From contig NW_026262626.1 of assembly GCF_021869535.1 (NCBI RefSeq), positions 24,304,001 through 24,368,000 of the forward strand: a stretch of 64,000 bases of DNA, in the 5' to 3' direction. This DNA is from Mytilus californianus. Its lineage: Eukaryota. Below, in pieces: positions 9,453-24,899 of the stretch (position 1 is the first letter of the stretch; every line of letters starts with the position of its first letter). Both the position numbers and the translations under genes were made by a program. Under the pieces are notes generated by a model. It was not told the origin of the DNA, searched no databases, and worked only from the letters and a program-made list of their open reading frames with translations.

Positions 9453-12429
9453 TCACACAGAAAATCTTCTAATCCGTTGTTTAAGGAAAAACATTATGAA
9501 CCAATATTCCTCAACATCCCGTTTGCTTACAGTCTTATTTCCAGCTTTGTCTAATAATGAAACAGCCTTCAGACATTCTCTAAATACCTCGTTAGGGTAA
9601 TTTTCCCATCTATATTTACTTTCCTTCAAAAGAGTTTTGTTTTGTTCAAATAACTTTCTTGTGCATTCTAAAAGTGACACAGAGTTATAATCCCGAACAT
9701 TGGATGATTTGCATAAGTCAAACAATGATTTGACCTTTTCAACACGTTTATTCACGCCTGATTTAGTTATAGCATATTCTAGGAGTAAATGTTTCTTTTT
9801 ATTATCTAGTTTACTTCCTAAACCAAGCTTAACTAAATGTTTTATACCATCTTCATCAGTATCTTTAGAAATAAACGACAGAAGAGGCAAATTGTGATTT
9901 CTATTTATACTGCAACTTGTGTCTTGGAATACTTCAAAATCGAACAAGTCAACCAACAGCTGAAATAATTGAAAGTTTCCGATGAATGGTTTTCGTCTAT
10001 TTTCTAATGATACAATCTGTAGTAATATTTCAGAATAATTTTTCCACAGAGCAATTTGCATAGTTGTTACTCCACCTTCATTTTTCATTTTATAATCGGC
10101 CCCATTTTGGAGAAGAAAGTTAGCAATTTCGACTCTCCCTTTCATTAATGTAATCATGAAGGGTAATCTTTCACCTGATAATTGGTTATTTACTTCAGCA
10201 TTATTGTTCAGCAAAGTCTTCAATACATTCACGTGACCATTTTCTACTGATGCTAAAAGGGGCGATGTGCCATGTTCGTCACATATGTTAACATCTCCAC
10301 CGTTCTTTATCAAATACGAAACAACGTCTGAATGACCTTCTTTAGACGCAACGCACAATGGTGATTCGTTATGGTTATCACACAAATTCACATCTGCCCC
10401 ACTTTCTACAAGGATTTTTACGATTTCTATAAAACCCCCATATGAAGCTTGGAATAAAGGTGTCATATTACTGTATCCAGTAATGTCCACGTCAGCGCCG
10501 TTTTGGACGAGACAGCTAACTATATCAGAATATCCTTGTATTGCTGCGATGTACAAGGAGGGTACACAACCACTTATCATATACATATTTGGTATATTTT
10601 TATTTACGTCTGCACCATTTTGAACTGAATATTTTACGATTTCATAATATCCATTCTCTGATGCAACATTAATATAGGAAATTCGTAATCGAAATCAGCC
10701 AAATTCACATCAGCACCAGCTCTAACTAACAGTTCTACAATCTTAAAATTATTAAACTGACATGCTGCAGTGAGAGGACTAAGCGTTCTATGATGATTAG
10801 CTTCAAGAAAATCGTCATCCATATACATTGATGTAGAGTTTATGCTCTTCTTCTTTACATACTTCAGAATTGTTTCAATTAAACCTGGATCGCCATTGTA
10901 AACTGACAACACAAGTAACCTAGCTTGTTCTTCTGTGCTTGAACCAAAAACCAAATCAGTCGACTCGTTATGATCATGCACATGCCTCACAATTTCTTGT
11001 AAAAGTCGAATGTGCCCGAAATAAACAACCCAACTGATAACTAGAATTCTATGAATGTTGTAACGCAAATTTTTGTCTTCAAATTCGCCTTCTCTTTTAT
11101 CAGTTAAAAGCGCTCTTTTGAAGGTTTCATCATAATAAGTAGACCCAGCTTCTTCTTCATGGTCCTTATCTTTTTCCTGGGTATTAATCAAATGATCGCA
11201 GTCACCAAAGAAAGAAAACTTATGACCTAAAAATGTCTTTTTAAAGTCGTTATACGGTTTCTTCTTCATTAATTGTATGAACACATCTAGAAATGGCTCA
11301 TATTTTAAAGCCTTGTTCATAAAAACATCGAACAATTGATTTGATTCAAGATCTGAATAAATACGTTCAGCTAAGTTTGAAAAATATTTTTCTGTAATCT
11401 TAATGCTCAACTCATCAAATGAAGAGTTCCCGAATACAATTACCTTACTTGATATAAAGTCACTTGGCATATACTCCAATATTTGTTCAGGGAAGACCTG
11501 GCCATAGTGAAAAGCGATTGCTTCGTAAATTGAATCATGTATAAACGAATATTCACTTTCTATCAGCACTACGTATGTTCCTTCAATATGAGATAAGGCA
11601 TCGATTATCTTTCTGTCTGCAGTTCCTCGATCTAATCCGCAAGAGTTGTAAATTCTTTTCTTTACATTTTTGAAAGGCAGGTTTTCCTTTGACAGCTTTC
11701 TATTGTTTACTAGACATAATACCAAAGACACATATTGTGCGGTGTTTGTTTTTTGAAGTTTACTCATTTCTTCAAGTAAATAATCAAAGGGCCTTTCAAA
11801 AAAATCTGAGCCAAACATTTGATATTTTACATTAGCTGCAAACAATTGACACAAAAATGGAAACATTATTTTGGCAGACGTTAGCGATAAGTTGATATAG
11901 AGCTTCTTATCGATACCTGCTTTTAAACAGTGGTTTGTCAAAATTTGTATTTTCTCTAGTTCATTTAAGTCATTGGTCTTGCTTTCCAAGTCAACAATAT
12001 GTTTTAAAACGAATGGTTTTAATCCGATAGCTTCATTATATACCGTCTTTCGACAAGTAAACACAATCTTTGATCTGTTATTAATAGAATTGAGAATAGT
12101 TTTCTTACATGAGACTATATTATTTAATCTGCTCAGATCTAGAGCAAAACTCCCTAAGACATCATCTAATAAAAACACTTGTCGAATATTACCGTTTCCA
12201 TATCGTACAATTTCATCCTCATTATAAACAGGGATAACCTCCCATCCCAACCTTTCGAACAGTAGTGCAATATGTCTTCCAGTCGCTGTTTTACCAGAAC
12301 CAGGACCGCCGATAAAAGTCACCATAATTTGTTTGTTTACCTCTTCATAAGCCTCTTTGTATCCACGTGTTTAATTGCAGAACACAATATCATGCATTTT
12401 CCAATCTTTTAGTATTCTAAGTTGGCCTT
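9453..12429 (-). CDS. Paralog-1 exon 5: nSTAND3-type P-loop NTPase, helical domain, ~8 ankyrin repeats, C-terminal tail
   Basis: Walker A GGPGSGKT, Walker B VFLLDDVLG, sensor-like IVFTCRK. Ankyrin consensus repeats such as TPLFQASYGGFIEIVKILVESGADVN and SPLCVASKEGHSDVVSYLIKNGGDVN. Joins ORFs 10634..12325 and 9453..10586 across a frameshift (FPIL-x-VASENGYYEIVKY). Confidence 0.9.
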
Positions 12430-12574
12430 CTTAAATTAAACAAAACAAAGTCATGCTTGATTTCAAAATTATTCTGTTTAATATTCAAAACATGTATTTT
12501 TTTAAACGGAATAAGACATTATATATGTAACATCCAATGCATTAAACGGATATTTACTGCTTGCAAAAGTATGA

Positions 12575-12790
12575 ATTATTCTTTATACTAAGGACTTTCC
12601 TATCCCAGGCATATATAACCTTAGCCGTATTTGGCACAACTTTTCGGAATTTTGGATCATCAATGCTCTTCCACTTTATACTTTTTTTGGCTTTCTTACT
12701 TTTTTGATATGAGCGTCACTGATGAGTCTTATGAAGACGAAACGCGCGTCTGGCTTTTTAACTTATAAGCCTGGTACCTTTGATAAATAT
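12575..12790 (+). repeat. Dispersed repeat family E (TCACTGATGAGTCTT...GACGAAACGCGCGTCTGGC)
   Basis: Same motif inverted at ~29540-29665, direct at ~45985-46135 and decayed at ~54300-54520. I recall this as an abundant Mytilus repeat. Confidence 0.65.
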
Positions 12791-12859
12791 TAGTACGTCG
12801 AAATGTACTATTGTATTGTTTATTGTTGTATTTTTCTGTCCTGAACGTTCTTGCATTTA

Positions 12860-13140
12860 TTTGTACCGTAGTCCTGTCATGTAATGTTGTCATTATAGTG
12901 TTATATTTAACATTGCCACAAAAGTAGATTCAACCCACCATTTGTACCAAGTCAGGAAAACGGCAGTTGTTATCTTATAGTTCGTTTCTGTGTGTGTTGC
13001 ATAGCCGTTTGTTTTTTGTTGCACTTCAGTGTTTCTGTTGTTTCGTTGTTTTCCTCTTATAGTTGACGCGTTTCCCTCGGATTTAGTTTGTAACTCGGAT
13101 TTGTTTTCTCTCAATCGATTTATGACTTTCGAACAGCAGT
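12860..13140 (+). repeat. Dispersed repeat family D (TGTACCAAGTCAGGAA core)
   Basis: Core TGTACCAAGTCAGGAA also at 24900-25190 (-), 25635-25810 (-), 26740-26880 (+) and ~38950-39100. Confidence 0.6.
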
Positions 13141-13442
13141 ATACAACTGTTGCCTTTATTAATACCTCTCATAGCGTGGTTCATTGATTGTTGAACAGCA
13201 TTTATCTCCATTTAAAACACTGTTTGCGTTAAGAAATTTGTCTTAAGTTCTCATTTTAATACTGACTTCTTAGTTCCAAAATGAAAAGCAATCGTTAATT
13301 GATATAGCAAAGCTGATTCGACCACTCCATATGATACATTTATTTAAGAAATAATTATTACCGGCCCTAAATATGTTGATAGTAATTTTTTACCTACATG
13401 AACCTGTTAAAATATCATTAAGACTTTGAATTCAACACTTAC

Positions 13443-13698
13443 CTCGTATATGATCAGGAATATGCATATTTCTGGTCTCGTCTATATCCGTTCTGTAGTA
13501 AAAAACCGCATCTTTAATGTCTTTTATTTCATCCTGAAAGCCAATCATATCATTTTGTAATTGATACACCTCATCTTTAATTTTACAGATATTCTTCCTC
13601 ATATTTTTCATTTCATTTGTTTGGGATCCAATAAATTGCTTGCATTCTAGTGCTGATATCTCAGGTTTCATTGCTCCTTGACTAACTCTGTTGATAGC
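13443..13698 (-). CDS. Paralog-1 exon 4: end of HEPN domain plus coiled-coil linker
   Basis: Acceptor tctag|GCT (phase 0), donor G|GTAAGT (phase 1). Reads AINRVSQGAMKPEISALECKQF...EMKNMRKNICKIKDEVYQLQNDMIGFQDEIKDIKD...HIPDHIR(E), with a heptad pattern. Confidence 0.85.
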
Positions 13699-13824
13699 CT
13701 AGATATAAAAAGATAAATTTGATATGACAAATTGAACCAGAAATACTTTTTAATGAATGGTAACAGCTTTTACAGATAGTTATGTTCGTGGAAGGCTATA
13801 TCATTATGAATAATTTTTACCGCC

Positions 13825-14041
13825 AGACTTAAGCGCCACTTTTGGGCTATTTCGTTGCGGCCAGTTTTTTTTTTTGGTGGAGGAAGCCGGAGTGCCCAGA
13901 GAAAACCTCCGACCTTCGATTAGAAAACTGATTGGAGTCGAGTGCACCCTCATGAGCGGAGTTCGAACTCAAAACCTCATTGTTGACTGGTTAGTGATTC
14001 CAATAGTAGAACTAGTTAGACCACTTGGCCACCGAGGCCCC
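13825..14041 (-). mobile_element. tRNA-derived SINE with Deu/Nin-like central domain
   Basis: Reverse complement shows A box GGTGGCCAAGTGG, B box GAGTTCGAACTC, then GGTTTTCTCTGGGCACTCCGGCTTCCTCCACC and an A-run. Confidence 0.75.
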
Positions 14042-15079
14042 TCAAAAACTAAAAAAGCATTAGCAAGACACTTATGAAATTTAGCAGAATTGATGTTATC
14101 AATATGTAGATGTATAATTGATAATTTGGATTGAAATCGAAGCACTGTTTTAAAGCACTAATCGTGGTAAAATAAAAACCCAAAAAGAATGTGAATGATA
14201 CTAACCAACTTTTGCACAGCTGTTGTGTATAATATTAAGATATGTATGATATATACGTGCAAATTAATTGTTGATATATTGTCATACAAGTGAGAGGTTT
14301 AGCTACGTATAAAACAGGTTTAAATCAACATTTTCTACATTAGAGTGTGTTTGAGCTTTTGATTTTGGTATTATTATGATTAATATTATAACCCAATGTT
14401 GACTGCAGTACCCCTGTTTTTGACATTTTTATTATGTCTGTTTGTTTTGTTCATACATGTACATCGTCAATATAATATTATTTTATGCTTGATTCCAGGT
14501 GTAAAAATACTAGTGTTTAGTTAGAAATATCATACATGTATATTTTGATAAATAATTCAAATTTGTTAGCTCGGTTTTTAACGAAAAAAAAAAAAAAAAA
14601 ATATTTTAATAATTATTCCATATTGATTAAAAGAATTTTTCCGAATTTTGAAAGAACAATTGAGGTAAAAACACCCTATTTAAAAGGAAATAAATACAGA
14701 AATAAGTCATAGTGAGCTAGAGTTATAGGAAACTGATATTTACTTCCAACATTTTCTCAATTTTTTCTTGTCAAATTTTCAGAAAATGGAAAGCCTATTA
14801 CATGTTGTACTTATTTTATATCAATTTTAGTACAAATATTCTATGACTAACACTTAGATGCGCAGGCGGGGTCCTTCCTATCAATTTTTCTAAAAAAAAT
14901 TTTTTTTTATCTATTTACAGGATTAAGTCAGGCCCCTAAAATTGACCCAGTCTTTCATTTTAAAGAAAAAATATTTATAATAATTCGTTCACCATACTTA
15001 TCAAGTTATTAAATGCTATGAGTTTAAACGAAATTATGTTAAGAGTAAATAAAAGTAAATTCTTAATATGCTAGTAAAC

Positions 15080-15318
15080 CTGAGAAAGGTCTTTCCATTG
15101 ATCTTGAAATTTTTGATCATTGATCTTCAATTCTGTATTATGTGCTATTGAATTTCTGTAGTAACGGATTCTTTCTATGTCGTCTGAAATCAGTTGATCA
15201 CCAGATAATGGTTTTTGTCCCCATCCTCTTGTTGGTGGAGGTATTTTATGGTTAAATGTATTCCTGATTAGTTTGTACAGCAAACTAAAGTCAAAGTCAA
15301 TACTATTAGCAGATCCAC
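15080..15318 (-). CDS. Paralog-1 exon 3: DZIP3-like HEPN core
   Basis: Acceptor tttcag|GT (phase 1), donor CAG|GTTTAC (phase 0). Reads GSANSIDFDFSLLYKLIRN...PPTRGWG...ISDDIERIRYYRNSIAH...QWKDLSQ, containing the HEPN R-N-x3-H motif. Confidence 0.9.
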
Positions 15319-16227
15319 CTGAAACTATAATATAACAGTTAAATCTAAAGCAAATAGGAACGGAATTTCAAACATTATGTAAATCTAGAAATTAAGTATC
15401 ACAGGAATCACTTGAACAATATATCAACTGATCGAACGAATGGATACTTTCTCTTCTGACTAAGTGAAGCCTCTTCCAATACCGGGAGCGGTAAACAAGA
15501 ATCAATAGAATGTTAATAAACTGAATAGCTAAATTTAGCAGGATTTTGAATCAATTTACACTCTATCTGACTCTTAGTGTTCTGTATTCAAGTTTTTCAT
15601 GTGATTAAATAAAAAATAAAAAAGGAGATGTGGTACTATTGCCAATGAGACAACTTCTCTCCAGGAATTTAACTGATGTAGAAGATTAGCAACTTTATGT
15701 CATTTTTCGGCTTTCACCAATAAGCACAACCCATACCATATACCACATATCAAACTATAAAAGCTTCCCAAGTATATTTGCCCATGTGACTTTCAACGAC
15801 TTTGTTCGTCTTATTTTAACAGTATTTAAGAAAAAACCACTATGTAGAAAAAAACATATTGTTTTGTATAGAAAGCTTGTAAACGAGCTTGGTTATTGTA
15901 TTTGATCGAACTATAATTTAAAGAACCTTAGACCTTTTGTAAATATTGTATTGAAAAATATGAGTACGTTAGTAAATGAAAATGTTAAACACAGTAAAAA
16001 TATATTTTGAAAAGAAAGGTAAACACTTCATTCTACAATTAGTCGTTACCTCTTTGTAAAAAAATATTGACAAATTGGAAACAAAGTGAGACATTTTCAA
16101 ATTGAACTTTCTGGCATTAAACCGTTTCCCCCTCTTATTTACAGTAAATCTAATACAAATCATAGCATCACAGAAAGGAAAGAAGCCAAGATAGGTAAAA
16201 AATCGTACTCAAAAGGTTAAGACTGAT

Positions 16228-16541
16228 TTATGATTGACAACATATTTGTTACGTTTGGAGGACGTTTTTTTCATCAAACTATCGGCATTCCCATTGGAAC
16301 CAATTGTGCCCCTCTTCTTGCCGACTTGTTCCTTTGTTATAATGAGGCTGACTTCATACAGGAACTTCTAAGGAAGTAAAAAAAGAAGTTAGCATTATAC
16401 TTTAACTTTTCTTTCCACTATATAGATGATGTTCTCTCACTAAATAATTCAAAATTTGGTGACTGAGTTGAAGGCGTCTATCCCATCGAAGTAGAGATAA
16501 AGGATACAACAGAAACACTTTAGTCTGCCTCATATCTTGAC
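16228..16541 (+). mobile_element. Penelope-like reverse transcriptase relic, part 1
   Basis: Degenerate reading IDNIFVTFGG...GIPIGTNCAPLLADLFL...YIDDVLSLNNSKFG...YPIEVEIKDTTE...SASYLDL, with stops and frameshifts. Confidence 0.85.
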
Positions 16542-16789
16542 TTAATTTGACCTGTTGATACTATTTGTAATGCTTTTTTGTTGTTTAATGTTAACATGTA
16601 TCTGGTCTATATACCAGCTTTGATTGTTTGGAATTACTATAAATTTTCACTACTTCGTACTATAAACATTAAAACTATTTCCTTTCTCCTTTTATACTGT
16701 ATATAATTTAGTGTAGATAAGTTTTCATTAGTGGGCAGACCTTTATTATTTATTCATCGGGATTTTACCCATTTTCCTATGTAAGGCAA

Positions 16790-17035
16790 GTTGGCAGGAG
16801 TAAATTTAGCGTGATTTAACCCTTTTTCATAAGTGTGTCGAGTTGGTAAACCCGAGGATTTGTATAGTAATCTATACAAATCCTTGGTTAACCAGTGTGT
16901 GGCATTTTTTTTTAAAGTGGGGCGAGTTGGTAAACAAGAGTGAGGGCGATTTTTAAAAAAGTGGGGCGAGTTTGTGAAAAAGTGGGGCGATTTGGTGTTG
17001 GGAGATTTGCCAGTGGGGCGAGTTGTCTTGCTTCC
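16790..17035. repeat. Short element with repeated TGGGGCGAGTT motifs, inside the insertion splitting the RT
   Basis: About six imperfect copies of (T)GGGGCGAGTT(G); accounts for ORFs 16754..17074 and 16940..17254. Confidence 0.5.
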
Positions 17036-17429
17036 ATATACATCACACTTCCGGCTCCTGTACATAAAGAACACGAAGTTTTATCGAGCATCTATTTTAT
17101 AGTTTTATTGTTGATATTCACCCTACATTTACGAAGTCTTAGAATAGTTTTATTGATATACAAGAGATTTCTTGGTATTCCTAAACGGAAGATTATACAG
17201 ACAGAAGAAGAAGTATACTTAACAACAAAATTATTTTCATTTACCGGTGTATAATATGACGTATTTTTTTCAAAGTTGATGCTTTTCTGAAATTGTTTAA
17301 CATTTCATAGCGGTATAATGTTTTTACTTTAATTATTCATCCCTTATTTTTATTAACTTTGTATTTACATTGTATCATAGATCTAATTTATTCGTTTATT
17401 GTGTGTTAATTTGTGTTACTACGTTTTTT

Positions 17430-17845
17430 GCTTGAGTTAAGCCATTCCAATTGATATTTTATAGTGTGTCTTTCTATGTTGTGATGTTGCACTATTGTTT
17501 CAGACAAGGGAGAAGGTTTAGTAGCATTAAAACGTTTAATCCCCCTGCAATTGTTTGCACCTGTCCTAAGTCAGGAATCTGATGTTCAGTAGTTGTCGTT
17601 TGTTTATGTGGTTCATAAGTGTTTCTCGTTTCTCGTTTTTTATATAGATTAGACCGTTGGTTTTCCCGTTTGAATGGTTTTACACTAGTATTTTTTTAGG
17701 ACCCTTTATAGCTTGCTGTTTGGTGTGAGCCAAGGCTCCGTGTTGAAGACCGTACCTTGACCTATAATGGTTTACTTTTATAAATTTTGACTTGGATGGA
17801 GAGTTGTCTCATTGGCACTCATACCACATCTTTCTATATCTATTT
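17430..17845 (+). repeat. Dispersed repeat family C (GCACCTGTCCTAAGTCAGGAATCTGATG core)
   Basis: Near-identical copies at 35249-35625 (+), 56565-56920 (+) and ~50275-50535 (-). All share the 3' end GTTGTCTCATTGGCACTCATACCACATC. Confidence 0.75.
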
Positions 17846-18575
17846 ACATCTAGAAATTGACAATGAGGGTTGACCGTTATTGAATATCCGTTTCACAGAT
17901 GAAATCGGATATGTTCCTTATGTCGTAACTACAATCCCGTTCCCTTTTCACGAATGTGACCTACCGAATTAGACTATTTACGACAAAAGAGATGATTTCA
18001 GCTTCCCAATTGTGAACTTTCCATTGCTATGTAGCAACATAACAGCAGTGACTGAATACAGAGTATATATCTCCCAATTGATACGGTATTCCCGGGCTTG
18101 TATTTCCTATCATGATTTCCTTGATAGAGGGTTGCTGCTCACAAGGAAGCTATCAAACCTAGAGTTCCAAATGGTGAAGTTAAAATCATCCCATCGTAAA
18201 TGTTATGGATGCCATCACGAGTTGGTTGACCGTTATGGAATATCTGTTTCACAGATGATATCGGATTTGTTCCTCATGTCGTAACTACAATCCCGTTTCT
18301 TTTTCACGAATGTGACCTACCGAACTAGACTATTTACCGGGTTTATAATAACATGAGCAACACGACGGGTGTCACATGTGAAACAGGATTTGCCACCCCT
18401 TCTAGGGCACCTGAAATCACCCCCAGTTTTTGATGTTGCTTCGTCTTTAGTTTTCTATGATGTGTCTTGTGTACTATTATTTGTCTGTTTGTCTTTTTCT
18501 TTTTTAGCCATGACATTGTAAGTTTATTTTCGATCTATGAGTTTGACTGTCCCTCTGGTATCTTTCGCTCCTCTT
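17846..18575 (+). mobile_element. Penelope-like RT relic, part 2, plus family-B 3' end
   Basis: Resumes HLEIDNEG...YDKRDDFSFPIVNFPLLCSNI...YISQLIRYSRAC...DRYGISVSQMISDLFLMS* (ORF 18012..18284), then GCACCTGAAATCACCCC 3' region. Confidence 0.85.
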
Positions 18576-18724
18576 TTATAAATAGAATACCACTTGACAT
18601 GAACTAACATATTTACGTTCATTCCCGTTTGAACGTAAAACAATCGTGTTTAGGAAAAATACAGACATGAGTAATAACACAACTAAAACACTATAGCATA
18701 CAACTTAAATGTTGTGACACCTAC

Positions 18725-18916
18725 CTGGAAAAAGTATATTTTTTTCATTTTTATTTAATTCTAAACTCCGAAATGTGCCTACATGCGTTGTGAGTGTTGA
18801 GTTCGGAACATGTTTAACAAAAATCAACCTCACAGCATCAGCTGCATGCTTCTGGCACAGTAGGTAGATTTTAAGAAAATTGACTTCTTCTGAGGTCAAC
18901 GACTCTGAGACATTTC
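18725..18916 (-). CDS. Paralog-1 exon 2: N-terminal half of HEPN domain
   Basis: Acceptor ttttag|GA, donor G|GTAGGT, phase 1-1. Reads (G)NVSESLTSEEVNFLKIYLLCQKHAADAVRLIFVKHVPNSTLTTHVGTFRSLELNKNEKNILFP(G). Confidence 0.88.
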
Positions 18917-19366
18917 CTAAAATAAAAAAAAATATTATGATCACTGATTCCTTTCGTCTATACGTTCATTCGTCCGATATCATTTTGTGCCCGTAAGTAT
19001 GTTCTCAACTTACTCTTTGCAGTGGATTTTTGGGTAACTTTTAAACATGTAAAAGAAGATCGTGCATATGATGACTGCAGCAATCTGATCCACTTGTACT
19101 GTGGATTCATTATTATTCGTTGGATACCAATTTCCCTGGTTTTTCGTGGGTACAGGTGATCCACGAATTCAAATGTTAAACGGATTACTCTTTTTCTATG
19201 AATCTATAGTAATTGCAGCTACCGACAAACCTAAAAGGTTTGATGCATCTCTACCTTAAATGATATGAGAGCTAATGACAGGAATGAATCCAAATAGCGT
19301 CTTTTCTTATAATATCATTTAAGGCATTCCAATTATTGCTGAATAAATGTTATGTGTTTTTATTTA

Positions 19367-22300
19367 CAGTACAACCTGTGACTTCCTCTTAGTTATGTCG
19401 ACCCTCTTGTATGGTCACCAGCGAATAGTGGCCATTTATTGGGGTATTCAATCTTGAGATGTTGGTCATTTATTGGGGTCACCTGTTGAAATCTATCGGG
19501 GTTGAAGTTTTTAGCTTGTATGTTTCATTAAGATTTACCTGTACAGGTAACTCAGGTTTCTTCTCAAATTGACATATCACCTTTTCTTTAAAATGTAGAA
19601 TAGAATGTTGTTTTAGTCTTTGTTAATTCATATCATTTGTTGATTTTTCTGTCTTTATATATACATATTTTCCTTTTTTTTATAATGTTTTTTTTTTATT
19701 TTTTATTTGTTTTTTTTTTTTTTGCTTCTTATTCTTTTAATTTCTTCTTGGAAATAATTTTTAGTAGAAATGACAAAAACTCAAAGATAAGTAAAGTTAT
19801 TGACTAGCATTTGAAAACATAACAGAGAATCCTTGAAATTATTTTTACAGTAAAAAAAAAGTTATTGTACATGATGTACATTGTATTCAATTGTTTGTTT
19901 GTATTATTAAATGAATTATTATTAATTATAACTTATAATCATGCAAATGATATGTTTAAAGGAACCATGAAGCAAGTAATTTAATAAGCCTGTTTCTTAA
20001 CTAATTAAAATTATCAATGTCATGAATATCAATCCTTTTACAATAAACTTTGTTAACAAAGTTGTACAATCTATTTTAATGATTATTATTCAGGAAAACT
20101 AAAAATATCATTATATGGCATGTATGGTATATGAATAAACTAGTTTTGTTTATCTTCTATATTTTTCCAAATCTCCAAACTGGAGTTGTGCATGAAGAAT
20201 CACTAGAGACTTAAATTTTTCAAATGGCTACCTAGTTATCATCAAATTTTGATATATGCTAATCATAATGAAAAATGTTCTTATCTCTATATTGATCTGA
20301 ACATGGAAGTAATATTTAAAAGGAATAACAACGACTAATTAGCATGTATTAATGGCATGCAGAGCTCTGTACTAAAGTCATATGATTTTATCCAATTATA
20401 GTCTCAGCGGCAAGACCCCTTTGGTTACTATCTGTGATACCGCGGTTGTAAAATGACATCTGGAATTTCTTATCAGTCACGTGATTTTATCGAGTACGGT
20501 AATTATAAAGCACCTGTGTGAAATCCTAGTTTATTAATTAACAAGGTGGTGCTGTATCATATTAAACTTCTACCTTCCAAAAAAAATCGAATGATGTAAA
20601 AAACTTGAAAAACGGACGAGAATTGTGTACACTACAGCAGTTAAACATAGAAAATTGTATTTATTTTTGCATATTTTTGCTTTTTGCCGTTCGTATTAAA
20701 CTCATCCAAAAGTATTTTCCGATTAAAAGCGGATCCCGAGTAAAACAGGTAATACCGACGAAGCGATCAGGTTTCACATGATGTTTAACAAAATAATGAA
20801 GACAAATGAAGACATAGATTGTTTTACTGTTGAAATGTGCAAAGTTTATCGAGATTTAAAAAAAGGATATTTACTTTCAAGTATTTTAAATTTATGTATA
20901 TGTAATAAATGTCATTGATTACATTATTGAGACTGGAAACTAAAATCGGGATAATAAGTTCGTAAATATCTATTTTAAAAAAGTGTTTTAATACAGTTAA
21001 TATAACACGCTACGGCCAAAAAAAAAAAAAAAAATACAAAATGAGCTTGACCCTATCTGCCTAACCGCATATTCATTTATACAAATTAGTTTAAAGAATA
21101 AAAACGTTTGTGAATATTTTAATTGACTGGTTTACACGCATGACTTGGATTATTCATATTTAATAAAAGGGGGTCCAAACATATTTTTTGTACAATCATA
21201 TTCTTAATTATTTAAGAAATGGGGTCTTAACTGTCTGTAAATATTAATATTGAAAACGAGTCACCCATGTTCTCCAGTTTCTAAGACCAAAATAAACAGA
21301 AATAGGAAAATTATACTAAAATCAACATTGAACGAATTACTCTAGTCGGCAGCGTACATCAGCGGAATGTAACGAGTGGACTATTCGGGTTACTTCGCAC
21401 GTATATACGACAACAACTTGTCTGTTGGTAATTTTCCGTGAACACGAAAACGACCAAAAAGTGTCAGTGATTTGATCGATCACATGCGGTGAATCAACTA
21501 CCATTTCATATCGTAAACTGATTAACGAGTAAACGAAAGATAGGCGGTAACGCAGATGAAACCTTTGAACTGGCGTTGTTGTTATTCCTCTCAATATTAC
21601 TTCCATGATCTGAATAAAGTAAATCTTATGAAAAGAAATTATTTAAAGAAAAAATTGTCTTGCTTTTTGAAACAATTGTAAACTTATCAAATATGTTATC
21701 TTCAGTTTGGCTAATTTTGTCAGTTAACAGGCAAAACTTGTCTCCAGAAAAAATAAAGTACACTTCTATATAGATTGTGACATTTTTATGGTCTATTAAT
21801 TAAATCACTGTTTGTTCTGTGCATTATATTGTCGAAACTGCAGGACTGGCATATGCATGATACATATTCTTGGTATACATTTGCAAAGAATATTTCACTC
21901 AACTCAGGCCTTTTAGATAAAGTTAATAATTGCAGGGACTTGAATGAATTAGATTCATTAAAGCCCTTGATAAAAAAAAATGAATTTTTAAAAAAAAAAA
22001 GAATATTTTTTAAAATAAAATAAAAACTTATGATGAAAACAGTAAACTCAAATGCTTCACTCAGTAAAGAATTAGTGGTCATGATTTAGAAATTGAAAAT
22101 GGTGGATAAAAATTACTATAAACATGATAAAGGATAGAATTGTTTGTAAAATTAATATAACAACTTAGAGATAATCTATTTGAAAATTGTTTACCTTCTC
22201 ATAATGATGTCTCCGACCAGTTTATGAATAAAATCTTGAATCTTATGAATAAAATCTTAACCACGAACAAAAAGTAAAAGAAATGCTAAACCTCTATAAC

Positions 22301-23165
22301 ATAGAACATGTTTAAAATATTGGCTCCTTTATAAAAGATAAGTCATTAGAACTTAGGGCAAAACCTAATATTTTTTTTCCATGTGTTTTGATTTCTTACA
22401 AAATTGTTATTTCTTTGCTTTATAATGATTGTTTTTGGGTTTTTTTTTTGTCAGAAACTTGATTAAATTGTAATATGTTTATATGACAACAAAAATATTA
22501 TCAAATTTTTCTGTAATGAATATTTTGAATATACATGTATTTATTCAATAGAGAAATAATGAATCGCCTAAATTTAACTTAGAATAAGTCATAAAGATCA
22601 TCTTAAACATTTGTTAAACCATGTTAAATGCAGTAAGTACTATATACAATTTTGATTTTAGAAAATTAATTTGAGAAACACCTTTTCAATGGAAAAAAGG
22701 CAGGCATTGTAAAAGTTTGCATTATATTAGATGATGATATTCATTTATACATTTATTATTCATTTGCCAAAAAATACATGTAAAAAATAACTTAAATTGA
22801 TAGAATTATTTAAAAGGTATAACATCAAAACAAACAGTCATGAGAACATTTTTACAAAAAAAAGTTAGGAAGCTATATGTTCAACTAGTTTTATTATTTC
22901 ATTTTATTTTTAGAATTTTCTTGTCATAATCACAGTTATTAAATTTGACAAACACATATATTTTACCTGAGACACTTTACCTGTAAGTTATATAATTTTA
23001 ACACTTCAATGCAGTCAGGATTTCCCTTTATCCTTGACTAGTTTTTTATTAATACCTTGTGTATTAATTAAGCAACGGGAGGTATAATGATGGACATTTA
23101 GGGCCATCATGGTGACCATAATATTTATGGCCACCACTAATAATATAATGTCACAGTTAGAACTG
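19367..23165. mobile_element. ~3.8-kb non-autonomous DNA transposon with TA TSD (Tc1/mariner/pogo-like termini) in intron 1
   Basis: TA|CAGTACAACCTGTGAC ... GTCACAGTTAGAACTG|TA (13/16 match) plus subterminal ATGGTCACCA (19411) / TGGTGACCAT (23110). No transposase ORF seen. Confidence 0.6.
20302..21607. mobile_element. Nested 1.3-kb TIR element with 7-bp TSD (P-element-like termini)
   Basis: ATCTGAA|CATGGAAGTAATATTTAAAAGGAATAACAAC ... GTTGTTATTCCTCTCAATATTACTTCCATG|ATCTGAA. Confidence 0.75.
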
Positions 23166-23319
23166 TATGTAAGACATTTAATTAAATAGACATTACGTTG
23201 CTACGTTAACAGATTATTTATTTTCAGTTAGTAGTTACATCTTAAAAAAAACTGTTGCCGTAGCAACGGAAAAAACGTAATGGCTTCATTTGTAAGAATA
23301 TGTGCATTGTTTCACCTAC

Positions 23320-23392
23320 CTGTAAACTTCCATTTATAATTGTAGACAAACAGTATTCCCAATATTGCAGTAACAACTATTTCAAAAATCAT
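23320..23392 (-). CDS. Paralog-1 first coding exon: N-terminal signal-anchor/TM helix
   Basis: Reads MIFEIVVTAILGILFVYNYKWKFT(G); donor G|GTAGGT phase 1 fits exon 18916. Homologous to 1186-1267; acceptor cttttag| at 23428. Confidence 0.75.
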
Positions 23393-24899
23393 CGTTCTAT
23401 GTATATACGCCTAGATCATGTTCATGCCTAAAAGTAAATAATGTTCCTTGAAATAGTTATCCTTAATAATTGAAGGAATTCACCATTGCAGAAGAATCTA
23501 AAGAACTGTTTCCTCTTATTTCAGTGTTCGTACAAAAAAATAAAAAGTCACGTTATTGGTTTAATTTCCTTTGTTAAGGTCGTTTGGTGCACATTGCTAT
23601 GTTTTGGTGTACTTTTTAGACAATAATACCCACTATGCATTAGATTCTGAAACAACGAGCGAAAAGTGCGAGCAAAACTCATAAATTTAAAGCATTCTCC
23701 TTGAAATTCTATTGACATATACAAATAAAGAGACGTGGTATGATTGCCGTAGAGAAAAATAACAAACTCATGACAGTGTTCTGAATATCAAAGTTTGACT
23801 TAAATTGAGTCAATGGTTTAAGGCTTTAAACTGAAGTAGATGTCTTGTATAGATATGGCTAAAATCATATATTGGAACCTTTATAATCCTTCATAAAATA
23901 AAAGGCGCTATTTGGTTATGTATGGAAAAAAGAAATACAGTTAGACATTAAGTCGCTTGACATCGTTTGCTCTCATAGAAAATATAAGATTGTTTAAAAA
24001 AATGATAAATAGATATCATAAATACTAGTATACTAGAATGCGTTACAGAATAAAGGATATACATTGTATCAATAAGAATTTTCTAATGTGTTATACATGT
24101 TACAGCACTCCTATGTTTATTTAGGAAAAGTTTTGAAAACATTGTGTTTGGAGACGTAACGGATACATTGATTAAGAACTACTAGAAGACGTTGCGGAAA
24201 TACAATGCCTATTCCTTGTCTTGTGTAGGATAAAAACCATTAAAATTATACGGACCAAGAATTTAAATCGGAGGTAAGGAATGTCATCTGAAGATGTCAT
24301 AAAAATACTGCTGTGGTCAGATCTTTGGATTAATGAGAATTGCCTTAAAAGACGCTCACTCTTTTGCCAGGAAATAAAAAAAGCCGATATTTATTTCTTA
24401 GGAAACATCAATACGTTCAAATTAAAAAGCAAGAGGCAAATTTGTATATTGAATACGAGACAAATAATTTAATGAAGTGTCCATGAAATCCAGTAAGATG
24501 CTGATATGATATGCCAGTCCCCTGGTTCAGATTTTAGAATTTTTCTGAAAATTAGCCAAAGCAAAAGATTCCACTGGAAGAACCACGAGTTGCAATGAGT
24601 CTATGAAAATTTAAATTCAATTCAGACACTTGTTTCAAAGTAACGTATGATGGACAAAATGATTTTTTTATTCGCCGTTGATAGAACACTTTAGTTTGTA
24701 ATTCCTTTTAGGTTTTTTGTCCCGATTGTGAAAATTGATAAAAAAAAATCAACATAGAATCATGGAGGACCTATATAAGCGATGCTTATTTTGCATTTTG
24801 CATATTGTCCATGCGTTCCAATCAGAAAATACACTTTTTCATACATTGGTAATAATTTGGTGAATATAATTTTTCTTTTATGTTCGATTGGTAATGTCT

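Follow-up and report, generated by a model that had tools for sequence, protein, structure and literature searches.

HEPN_DZIP3 domains combined with STAND NTPases and repeats form architectures that are expanded in bivalves and cnidarians (PMC3710099; PMC9646362; PMC8195603). In the DZIP3/hRUL138-like HEPN-STAND proteins (Anantharaman et al. 2013, PMC3710099; Takeuchi et al. 2022, PMC9646362; Kaur et al. 2021, PMC8195603), the HEPN_DZIP3 domain stands at the N terminus, bears an Rx4H motif, and is followed by a central STAND domain and C-terminal repeats, and the published members pair HEPN with NACHT, LRR, TPR, WD40, ANK, Death, or CARD domains. This family has expanded in a lineage-specific manner and varies in copy number; its members form tandem arrays, pseudogenes are frequent, and a role in innate immunity is presumed. 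Here we describe a gene of this type, which we call copy A, from the mussel Mytilus californianus. It lies in a window of 64,000 nucleotides (positions 24,304,001 to 24,368,000 of contig NW_026262626.1, or C46 below), and it has the arrangement of the published family, except that its NTPase is nSTAND3 and not NACHT. Also, the mussel copies carry a hydrophobic N-terminal helix, while no N-terminal membrane helix is mentioned for the published family.

Copy A is a recently broken member of this known and hugely expanded bivalve family. It belongs to a tandem trio, and it appears to be inactivated; we think it likely that the intact form of the family, as represented by the neighboring paralog B, would be a membrane-tethered, NLR-like ribonuclease (RNase) switch. 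(NLR stands for nucleotide-binding leucine-rich repeat protein.) Few immune-type families in bivalves are as expanded and as variable as the HEPN-STAND-repeat genes, and we know of none of these genes for which a function or a place in the cell has been demonstrated.

A disrupted gene in a tandem cluster

The five exons that a preliminary description of this window had proposed for copy A (Table 1) are all on the minus strand; their borders are GT/AG, and their phases (1, 1, 0, 1) fit together. The order of parts given in that description (a hydrophobic helix, HEPN, a coiled coil, STAND, and ankyrin repeats) is also borne out by translation and by Pfam. We translated the pieces of copy A and searched them separately, and never read through the stop or the frameshift that are described below. 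Exon 3 alone matches HEPN_DZIP3 (PF18738; E = 9.5e-19, 68 bits, with a gathering cut-off of 27). The nSTAND3 family (PF20720) matches window positions 12370-10637 (E = 1.7e-26, 93.2 bits, with a cut-off of 27.2), and Ank_2 matches 10682-9456 (E = 2e-36), where there are about 7–8 ankyrin repeats. All three of the families that the preliminary description suggested searching for were found. Of the two tandem acceptors of exon 3, it is the upstream one that is chosen in both the RefSeq and the M. coruscus models, so that the protein gains Val-Ser ("FPVSGG").

HEPN domains have a conserved Rx4-6H motif, usually with an asparagine next to the arginine. Among 25 aligned relatives, the arginine of this motif is invariant, and the asparagine and the histidine are each at least 90% conserved. 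The gene had been described as an NLR/Avs-like receptor (Avs are the antiviral STAND proteins of bacteria), and the layout of effector, STAND, and repeats does agree with this. However, the copy A pieces have no Pfam match to NACHT, NB-ARC, or LRR, and have nSTAND3 and ankyrin instead, which places the gene in neither group: the predicted protein is NLR-like in layout only, and it is not an NLR sensu stricto or an Avs.

The last 180–214 residues of A and B do not match any Pfam family. This post-ankyrin region (window 9456-10000 on the minus strand, or about 180 amino acids, in copy A) is kept in A, in B, and in the M. coruscus copies, and it ends with "...LKQR.RR.S.".

Although the domains of exon 5 are present, as the preliminary description had claimed, its reading frame is broken twice, and neither lesion had been reported, although the suggestion in that description to express an intact ortholog hints at a broken copy. 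A premature TAA cuts off the NTPase from HEPN and the coiled coil, all of which share one continuous frame in paralog B, so that the longest product of copy A is a 272-residue stub with the helix, HEPN, and the coiled coil. At the position of this TAA, both of the M. coruscus A-type copies have AAA (Lys), a B-type Logan contig (L038) has GAA (Glu), the copy B protein has glutamate, and the relatives P0003 and P0167 read "FCNKT". The other lesion is an insertion of two nucleotides between ankyrin repeats. In DNA alignments, none of four comparators has this insertion, and it is outside of any homopolymer. Among the copies that we compared, both lesions are unique to copy A.

Because of the stop and the frameshift, copy A would be unable to make the full receptor. 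Since these are two independent and copy-specific lesions, an assembly artefact is unlikely. The ratio of nonsynonymous to synonymous substitution rates (dN/dS) between copy A and the M. coruscus copies is 0.26–0.44 in every segment, including downstream of the stop; for intact B, it is 0.42. These low ratios in all segments imply a long period of constraint, followed by recent inactivation, or else that the lesions are an allele of the individual that was assembled. Judged by its sequence, copy A is a young pseudogene or a null allele in this assembly. The locus should be annotated as a disrupted copy and not as a new receptor.

Copy A heads a row of three tandem paralogs (A, B, and C) on the same strand of contig C46. 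Paralog B has the same five exons as A (82, 192, 239, and 256 nucleotides and a long last exon) and an uninterrupted frame of 1253 amino acids. It corresponds to the RefSeq protein XP_052087894.1 (LOC127724932), which is uncharacterized. A and XP_052087894.1 share the five exons, the helix exon, and the domain order, with roughly 55–70% protein identity by exon, but B is intact while A is broken. The RefSeq model has 1386 amino acids, as it skips B's stop codon and is spliced on to pieces of STAND and ANK from copy C, which is broken; hence its 3' end appears to be chimeric. In copy C, the helix exon is intact, but there are two stops in exon 4 and several shifts and stops in exon 5, which mark it as an older pseudogene.

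The preliminary description stated that DZIP3-like HEPN/nSTAND3/ANK combinations are expanded in bivalves. This fits the literature as well as our count of HEPN-exon matches across the genome, with at least 150 scored of 409 candidates. The counterparts of these genes in M. coruscus (GCA_011752425.2) are partly degraded as well: there are stops and shifts in L037, exon 2 of L040 contains stops, and no exon 3 was detectable in L041. Turnover of the cluster seems to be rapid in both species, but assembly errors may account for some of the indels in M. coruscus.

The N-terminal helix exon

The exon ahead of the HEPN exon is kept open in three copies from M. californianus and in three from M. coruscus. 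All six have a hydrophobic run of about 17 residues, an end of the form W-K/N-F-T/R, and a phase-1 GT donor, and five of them show the start methionine. In copy A, the exon translates to MIFEIVVTAILGILFVYNYKWKFT. Between copy A and its M. coruscus ortholog, 68 of the 73 nucleotides of exon 1 are identical (93%), as compared to about 69% and 53% in the 200-nucleotide flanks.

This exon had been thought easy for annotation to miss, but two RefSeq genes, XP_052087894.1 and LOC127711240, begin with it. In XP_052087894.1, the helix exon is spliced to exon 2, and the M. coruscus model CAC5395393.1 also joins a helix-like exon to exon 2. LOC127711240, from contig C154 of M. californianus, represents a second subfamily. 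Its start helix ends with "...VKWTITG", and so does that of its M. coruscus ortholog; the same kind of N terminus is seen in the M. coruscus protein "ANKRD50". The helix exon of LOC127711240 is followed by an intron of about 18 kb, a predicted immunoglobulin-like exon (C154:26,811,097 onward), and then HEPN, nSTAND3, and ANK. At these two mussel loci, we read the phase of the helix exon from the DNA, and it is phase 1 in both. Beyond the mussels, three RefSeq models from the oyster Saccostrea cucullata start with a helix and "KWT" or "KRT", followed by HEPN_DZIP3, nSTAND3, and ANK.

A paralog on contig C143 also has a related immunoglobulin-like exon, which precedes its HEPN exon. With the helix and immunoglobulin-like region of LOC127711240 as the query, we found only its ortholog in M. 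coruscus.

Most of the other relatives have HEPN from the start ("MAS..STEETTN") and no helix, which implies that the helix is an add-on of particular clades and lies outside of the HEPN fold. Exon 1 as a DNA query matched only itself in the genome; more distant copies were seen at the protein level. Using tblastn and a heuristic scan, we searched the 20 kb ahead of four paralogs that are more distantly related and found no convincing helix exon. For one of these four, the RefSeq protein led us to a helix exon that is 18 kb further upstream. A word-index protein search with residues 1–275 of B did not find any spliced, transcript-derived protein that starts with the helix exon; the hits were models from M. 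coruscus and M. edulis and fragments.

To make a rough estimate of the energy of membrane insertion, we summed the values of the Hessa 2005 scale, without position weighting, over 17-residue windows. B, C, the M. coruscus copies, and other relatives from mussels and oysters scored from -1.2 to -3.5 kcal/mol, while controls with no helix scored +10 to +13 kcal/mol. The net charge of the N-terminal flank is 0 to -3, and the net charge of the C-terminal flank is +2 or +3 in 8 of 10 anchored sequences (it is 0 in the L037 copy from M. coruscus and in the oyster protein P0242). Given the positive-inside rule, this bias implies a type-III signal anchor, with the N terminus outside and most of the protein on the cytosolic side. 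The orientation that was originally proposed, with HEPN in the cytosol, fits this pattern of an acidic N-terminal flank and a basic C-terminal flank.

The helix exon has a 17-residue hydrophobic core, an acidic n-region, and no small-residue cleavage motif, and in this it differs from classical signal peptides that are cleaved. We conclude that the helix exon is probably a real and old type-III signal anchor. From sequence alone, the membrane of the endoplasmic reticulum (ER) cannot be separated from the mitochondrial outer membrane.

Predicted structure of the HEPN region

Residues 1–300 of paralog B match HEPN_DZIP3 with 84.7 bits. We used AlphaFold2 to model residues 1–290 of B. HEPN, at residues 30–195, was predicted with high confidence (predicted local distance difference test, or pLDDT, above 90), and residues 197–289 were predicted to form long coiled-coil helices. 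Residues 1–28 were modelled as a detached helix with low confidence (pLDDT below 50). We compared the N-terminal model of B to known structures with VIA-align, and the best matches were Csm6 (Z = 7.8) and AbiF (Z = 6.8), followed by Roquin, Swt1, Cas13, HepS, and sacsin. Every Z score was below 8, and Foldseek found no match to this model in the PDB with E < 1. The assignment to HEPN rests on the Pfam match, on the conservation of the R, N, and H, and on structural matches that are dominated by HEPN proteins.

A model for the intact form

We propose that in the intact form, the short and acidic N terminus would be translocated, and the helix would span the membrane of the ER or of another organelle. 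The basic KW flank and all of the domains would remain cytosolic. The ankyrin repeats, together with the C-terminal region, would sense a ligand, and the STAND NTPase would then oligomerize. This would bring HEPN domains together to form an RNase site, which would cut RNA near the membrane. We infer membrane insertion, topology, RNase activity, and the mechanism of activation from the established behavior of HEPN RNases and STAND NTPases.

More tentatively, and with some doubt, we speculate that an old clade of HEPN_DZIP3-nSTAND3-ankyrin switches is common to mussels and oysters, and that these switches are fixed in the membrane of the ER or of another organelle by a type-III anchor, have almost no ectodomain, and act as ligand-activated RNases on membrane-associated RNA. 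If this is true, then their targets might be viral replication compartments or ER-bound mRNAs, and they would be a counterpart of Ire1 and RNase L that is built on a STAND scaffold. If the conserved anchor is real, it would give a defined site of action to a subset of the family. The anchor would be better studied in the intact XP_052087894.1 than in copy A, and a simple experiment on localization and RNase activity would be worthwhile.

Alternative explanations

We examined RNA evidence for window positions 18200-23999 in one raw RNA-seq run from M. californianus, of which about 6% was read, and in three contig sets from the same species. (That the contig sets are RNA is a guess.) The three contig sets hold 10–30% of the words of copy A's exon 5.

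Several results weigh against our model or against our view of copy A. In these four shallowly sampled runs or contig sets, exons 1 and 2 of copy A have zero depth, and the 23320->18916 joint between them, which the preliminary description had proposed as a check, was not found. Because the RNA was sampled so shallowly, this absence means that there is no support for the anchor exon, but it is not a refutation. Copy A's helix is also the weakest of the set: its best 17-residue window has a marginal insertion energy of -0.44 kcal/mol, and it has N18 and K20 where most copies are hydrophobic and where its ortholog has isoleucine at both positions. The M. coruscus models P0261 and P0153, which are for related copies, have other first exons. 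A structure prediction for a HEPN homodimer (two chains of B's residues 30–200) had a score of 0.06, which speaks neither for nor against our model. Finally, the lesions in copy A rest on a single assembly.

Could copy A nevertheless be a working full-length receptor gene in this species, so that the stop and the frameshift are allele-specific nulls or assembly errors? Its dN/dS is as low as that of intact B in every segment, which indicates selection until recently, and no splice site, catalytic motif, or NTPase motif has been lost. The contig sets from the same species also hold up to 30% of the exon-5 words. On the other hand, a substitution and a non-homopolymer insertion of two nucleotides are independent lesions, and neither is a typical assembly error. 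L037, an A-type copy from M. coruscus, likewise has many stops and shifts, and there is no expression signal at exons 1 and 2, so we consider a working gene to be improbable. Another idea is that the truncated product of copy A is itself functional: it might be a membrane HEPN protein with constitutive or regulatory action, or a decoy for the full-length paralogs, with which it would pair via the coiled coil. The stop is in the last exon, where nonsense-mediated decay is not expected. Exons 1–4 are intact, with RNSIAH preserved, and it is common in bivalves for HEPN_DZIP3 to occur as a stand-alone protein (PMC9646362). However, the zero RNA depth of exons 1 and 2 argues against a functional stub, and so does the degraded helix of copy A relative to its ortholog. 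Furthermore, dN/dS is as low downstream of the stop as upstream, which implies that the stop is young and not a long-kept design. A functional stub therefore seems very improbable to us, and we prefer to view copy A as a young pseudogene or null allele.

Another alternative concerns the anchor: the hydrophobic first exon might encode a cleaved signal peptide or an organelle-targeting or amphipathic segment, or the exon might be unused in mature mRNAs. STAND NTPases and ankyrin repeats reside in the cytosol, which argues against this alternative. The properties that we listed above (the 17-residue core, the acidic n-region, and no small-residue cleavage motif) would be atypical for a signal peptide, although most copies have a conserved N-x-S sequon right behind the helix, and AlphaFold2 gave this segment a pLDDT below 50. 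As for whether the exon is used, the junction reads were not found, and some M. coruscus models have different first exons. But RefSeq has the helix exon at two loci; two subfamilies of M. californianus, each on its own contig, have the phase-1 border and the "KW" flank; the oyster models start with a similar helix; and the exon is better conserved than its flanks. Overall, we think it unlikely that the segment is something other than a stable anchor, and we favor the type-III signal anchor.

Repeats at window positions 18394-18587 and 18976-19169 flank exon 2. Their depth is very high in the RNA-type runs and reaches thousands in the contig sets, and elsewhere in window positions 18200-23999, the coverage is mainly of repeats. 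Many reads stop at 19097 and 19133, with unrelated continuations beyond. The repeats that flank exon 2 are probably copies of a transposon or of a miniature inverted-repeat transposable element (MITE) that are expressed at other sites in the genome.

Features of the locus

Table 1. Features of copy A, its tandem paralogs, and a related helix exon. Coordinates are window positions unless a contig is given; lengths are in nucleotides (nt).
Feature	Coordinates	Strand	Remarks
Exon 1, copy A	23392-23320	-	73 nt; ATG + 24 codons + 1 nt (phase 1); hydrophobic helix and basic KWKF flank; donor GTAGGT
Exon 2, copy A	18916-18725	-	192 nt; first HEPN_DZIP3 helices; aligned with the canonical HEPN_DZIP3 start in relatives
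Tandem in-frame acceptor	15319-15324	-	6 nt upstream of exon 3, TAG|TTTCAG|GT; equivalent site in copy B
Exon 3, copy A	15318-15080	-	239 nt; HEPN_DZIP3 core
RNSIAH motif (HEPN)	15157-15140	-	Within exon 3
Exon 4, copy A	13698-13443	-	256 nt; coiled-coil linker; Pfam coiled-coil matches weak only
Exon 5, copy A	12429-9453	-	nSTAND3, helical region, ankyrin repeats, C-terminal region of ~180 amino acids; TGA at 9455-9453
Premature in-frame TAA	12373-12371	-	18 codons into exon 5, after codon 272, before the P-loop
Walker A GGPGSGKT, nSTAND3 NTPase	12310-12287	-
Walker B FLLDD, nSTAND3 NTPase	12175-12161	-
2-nt "TA" insertion (frameshift)	10670-10671	-	Between ankyrin repeats; placement ambiguous within TATTAATG
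Exon 1, paralog B	1267-1186	-	82 nt
Exon 2, paralog B	734-543	-	192 nt; remaining exons just outside the window, at lower coordinates, to C46:24,297,778
Copy C	C46:24,276,680-24,293,424		Outside the window; loci L033-L035; helix exon intact, MTFEYYFTAIMGILIVCLCIWNFR
Helix exon, LOC127711240	C154:26792687-26792788	+	Locus L051; ends T|G, phase matching copy A exon 1

Comparison with known systems

The architecture and its expansion have already been published. As the preliminary description had supposed, we did not find a paper that describes a membrane-anchored HEPN_DZIP3-nSTAND3-ANK protein, although our coverage of the literature was incomplete, so this is weak evidence. The anchored form seems to be undescribed, yet it is present in RefSeq as an "uncharacterized protein", and we consider it to be modestly novel.

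The likeness to bacterial Avs/AVAST proteins and to the NLRs of animals and plants lies in the logic of an effector, a STAND domain, and a repeat sensor, and in activation by ligand-driven oligomerization, which we propose for the mussel protein. In contrast to those systems, the mussel gene is eukaryotic with introns and lacks NACHT, NB-ARC, and LRR, so the likeness is architectural only.

Ire1, with its KEN domain, and C6orf70/ERMARD, which is predicted to be in the ER membrane, have a domain from the HEPN superfamily that is held at a membrane by a single transmembrane helix, as the mussel protein would be. Ire1 is an RNase that is switched on by oligomerization (PMC3710099). However, the HEPN families are not the same, and Ire1 has a luminal sensor and a kinase, where the mussel protein has STAND and ankyrin and would have almost nothing across the membrane.

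The TM-DED-TRADD-N receptor-like proteins of Crassostrea (PMC8195603; TM is for transmembrane) are also expanded in bivalves, and they are bound to the membrane with STAND or HEPN modules in the cytosol, as the mussel form would be. Those proteins are type-I, with a cysteine-rich ectodomain and DED/TRADD-N domains, whereas the mussel form has no ectodomain and has a short predicted anchor directly before HEPN.

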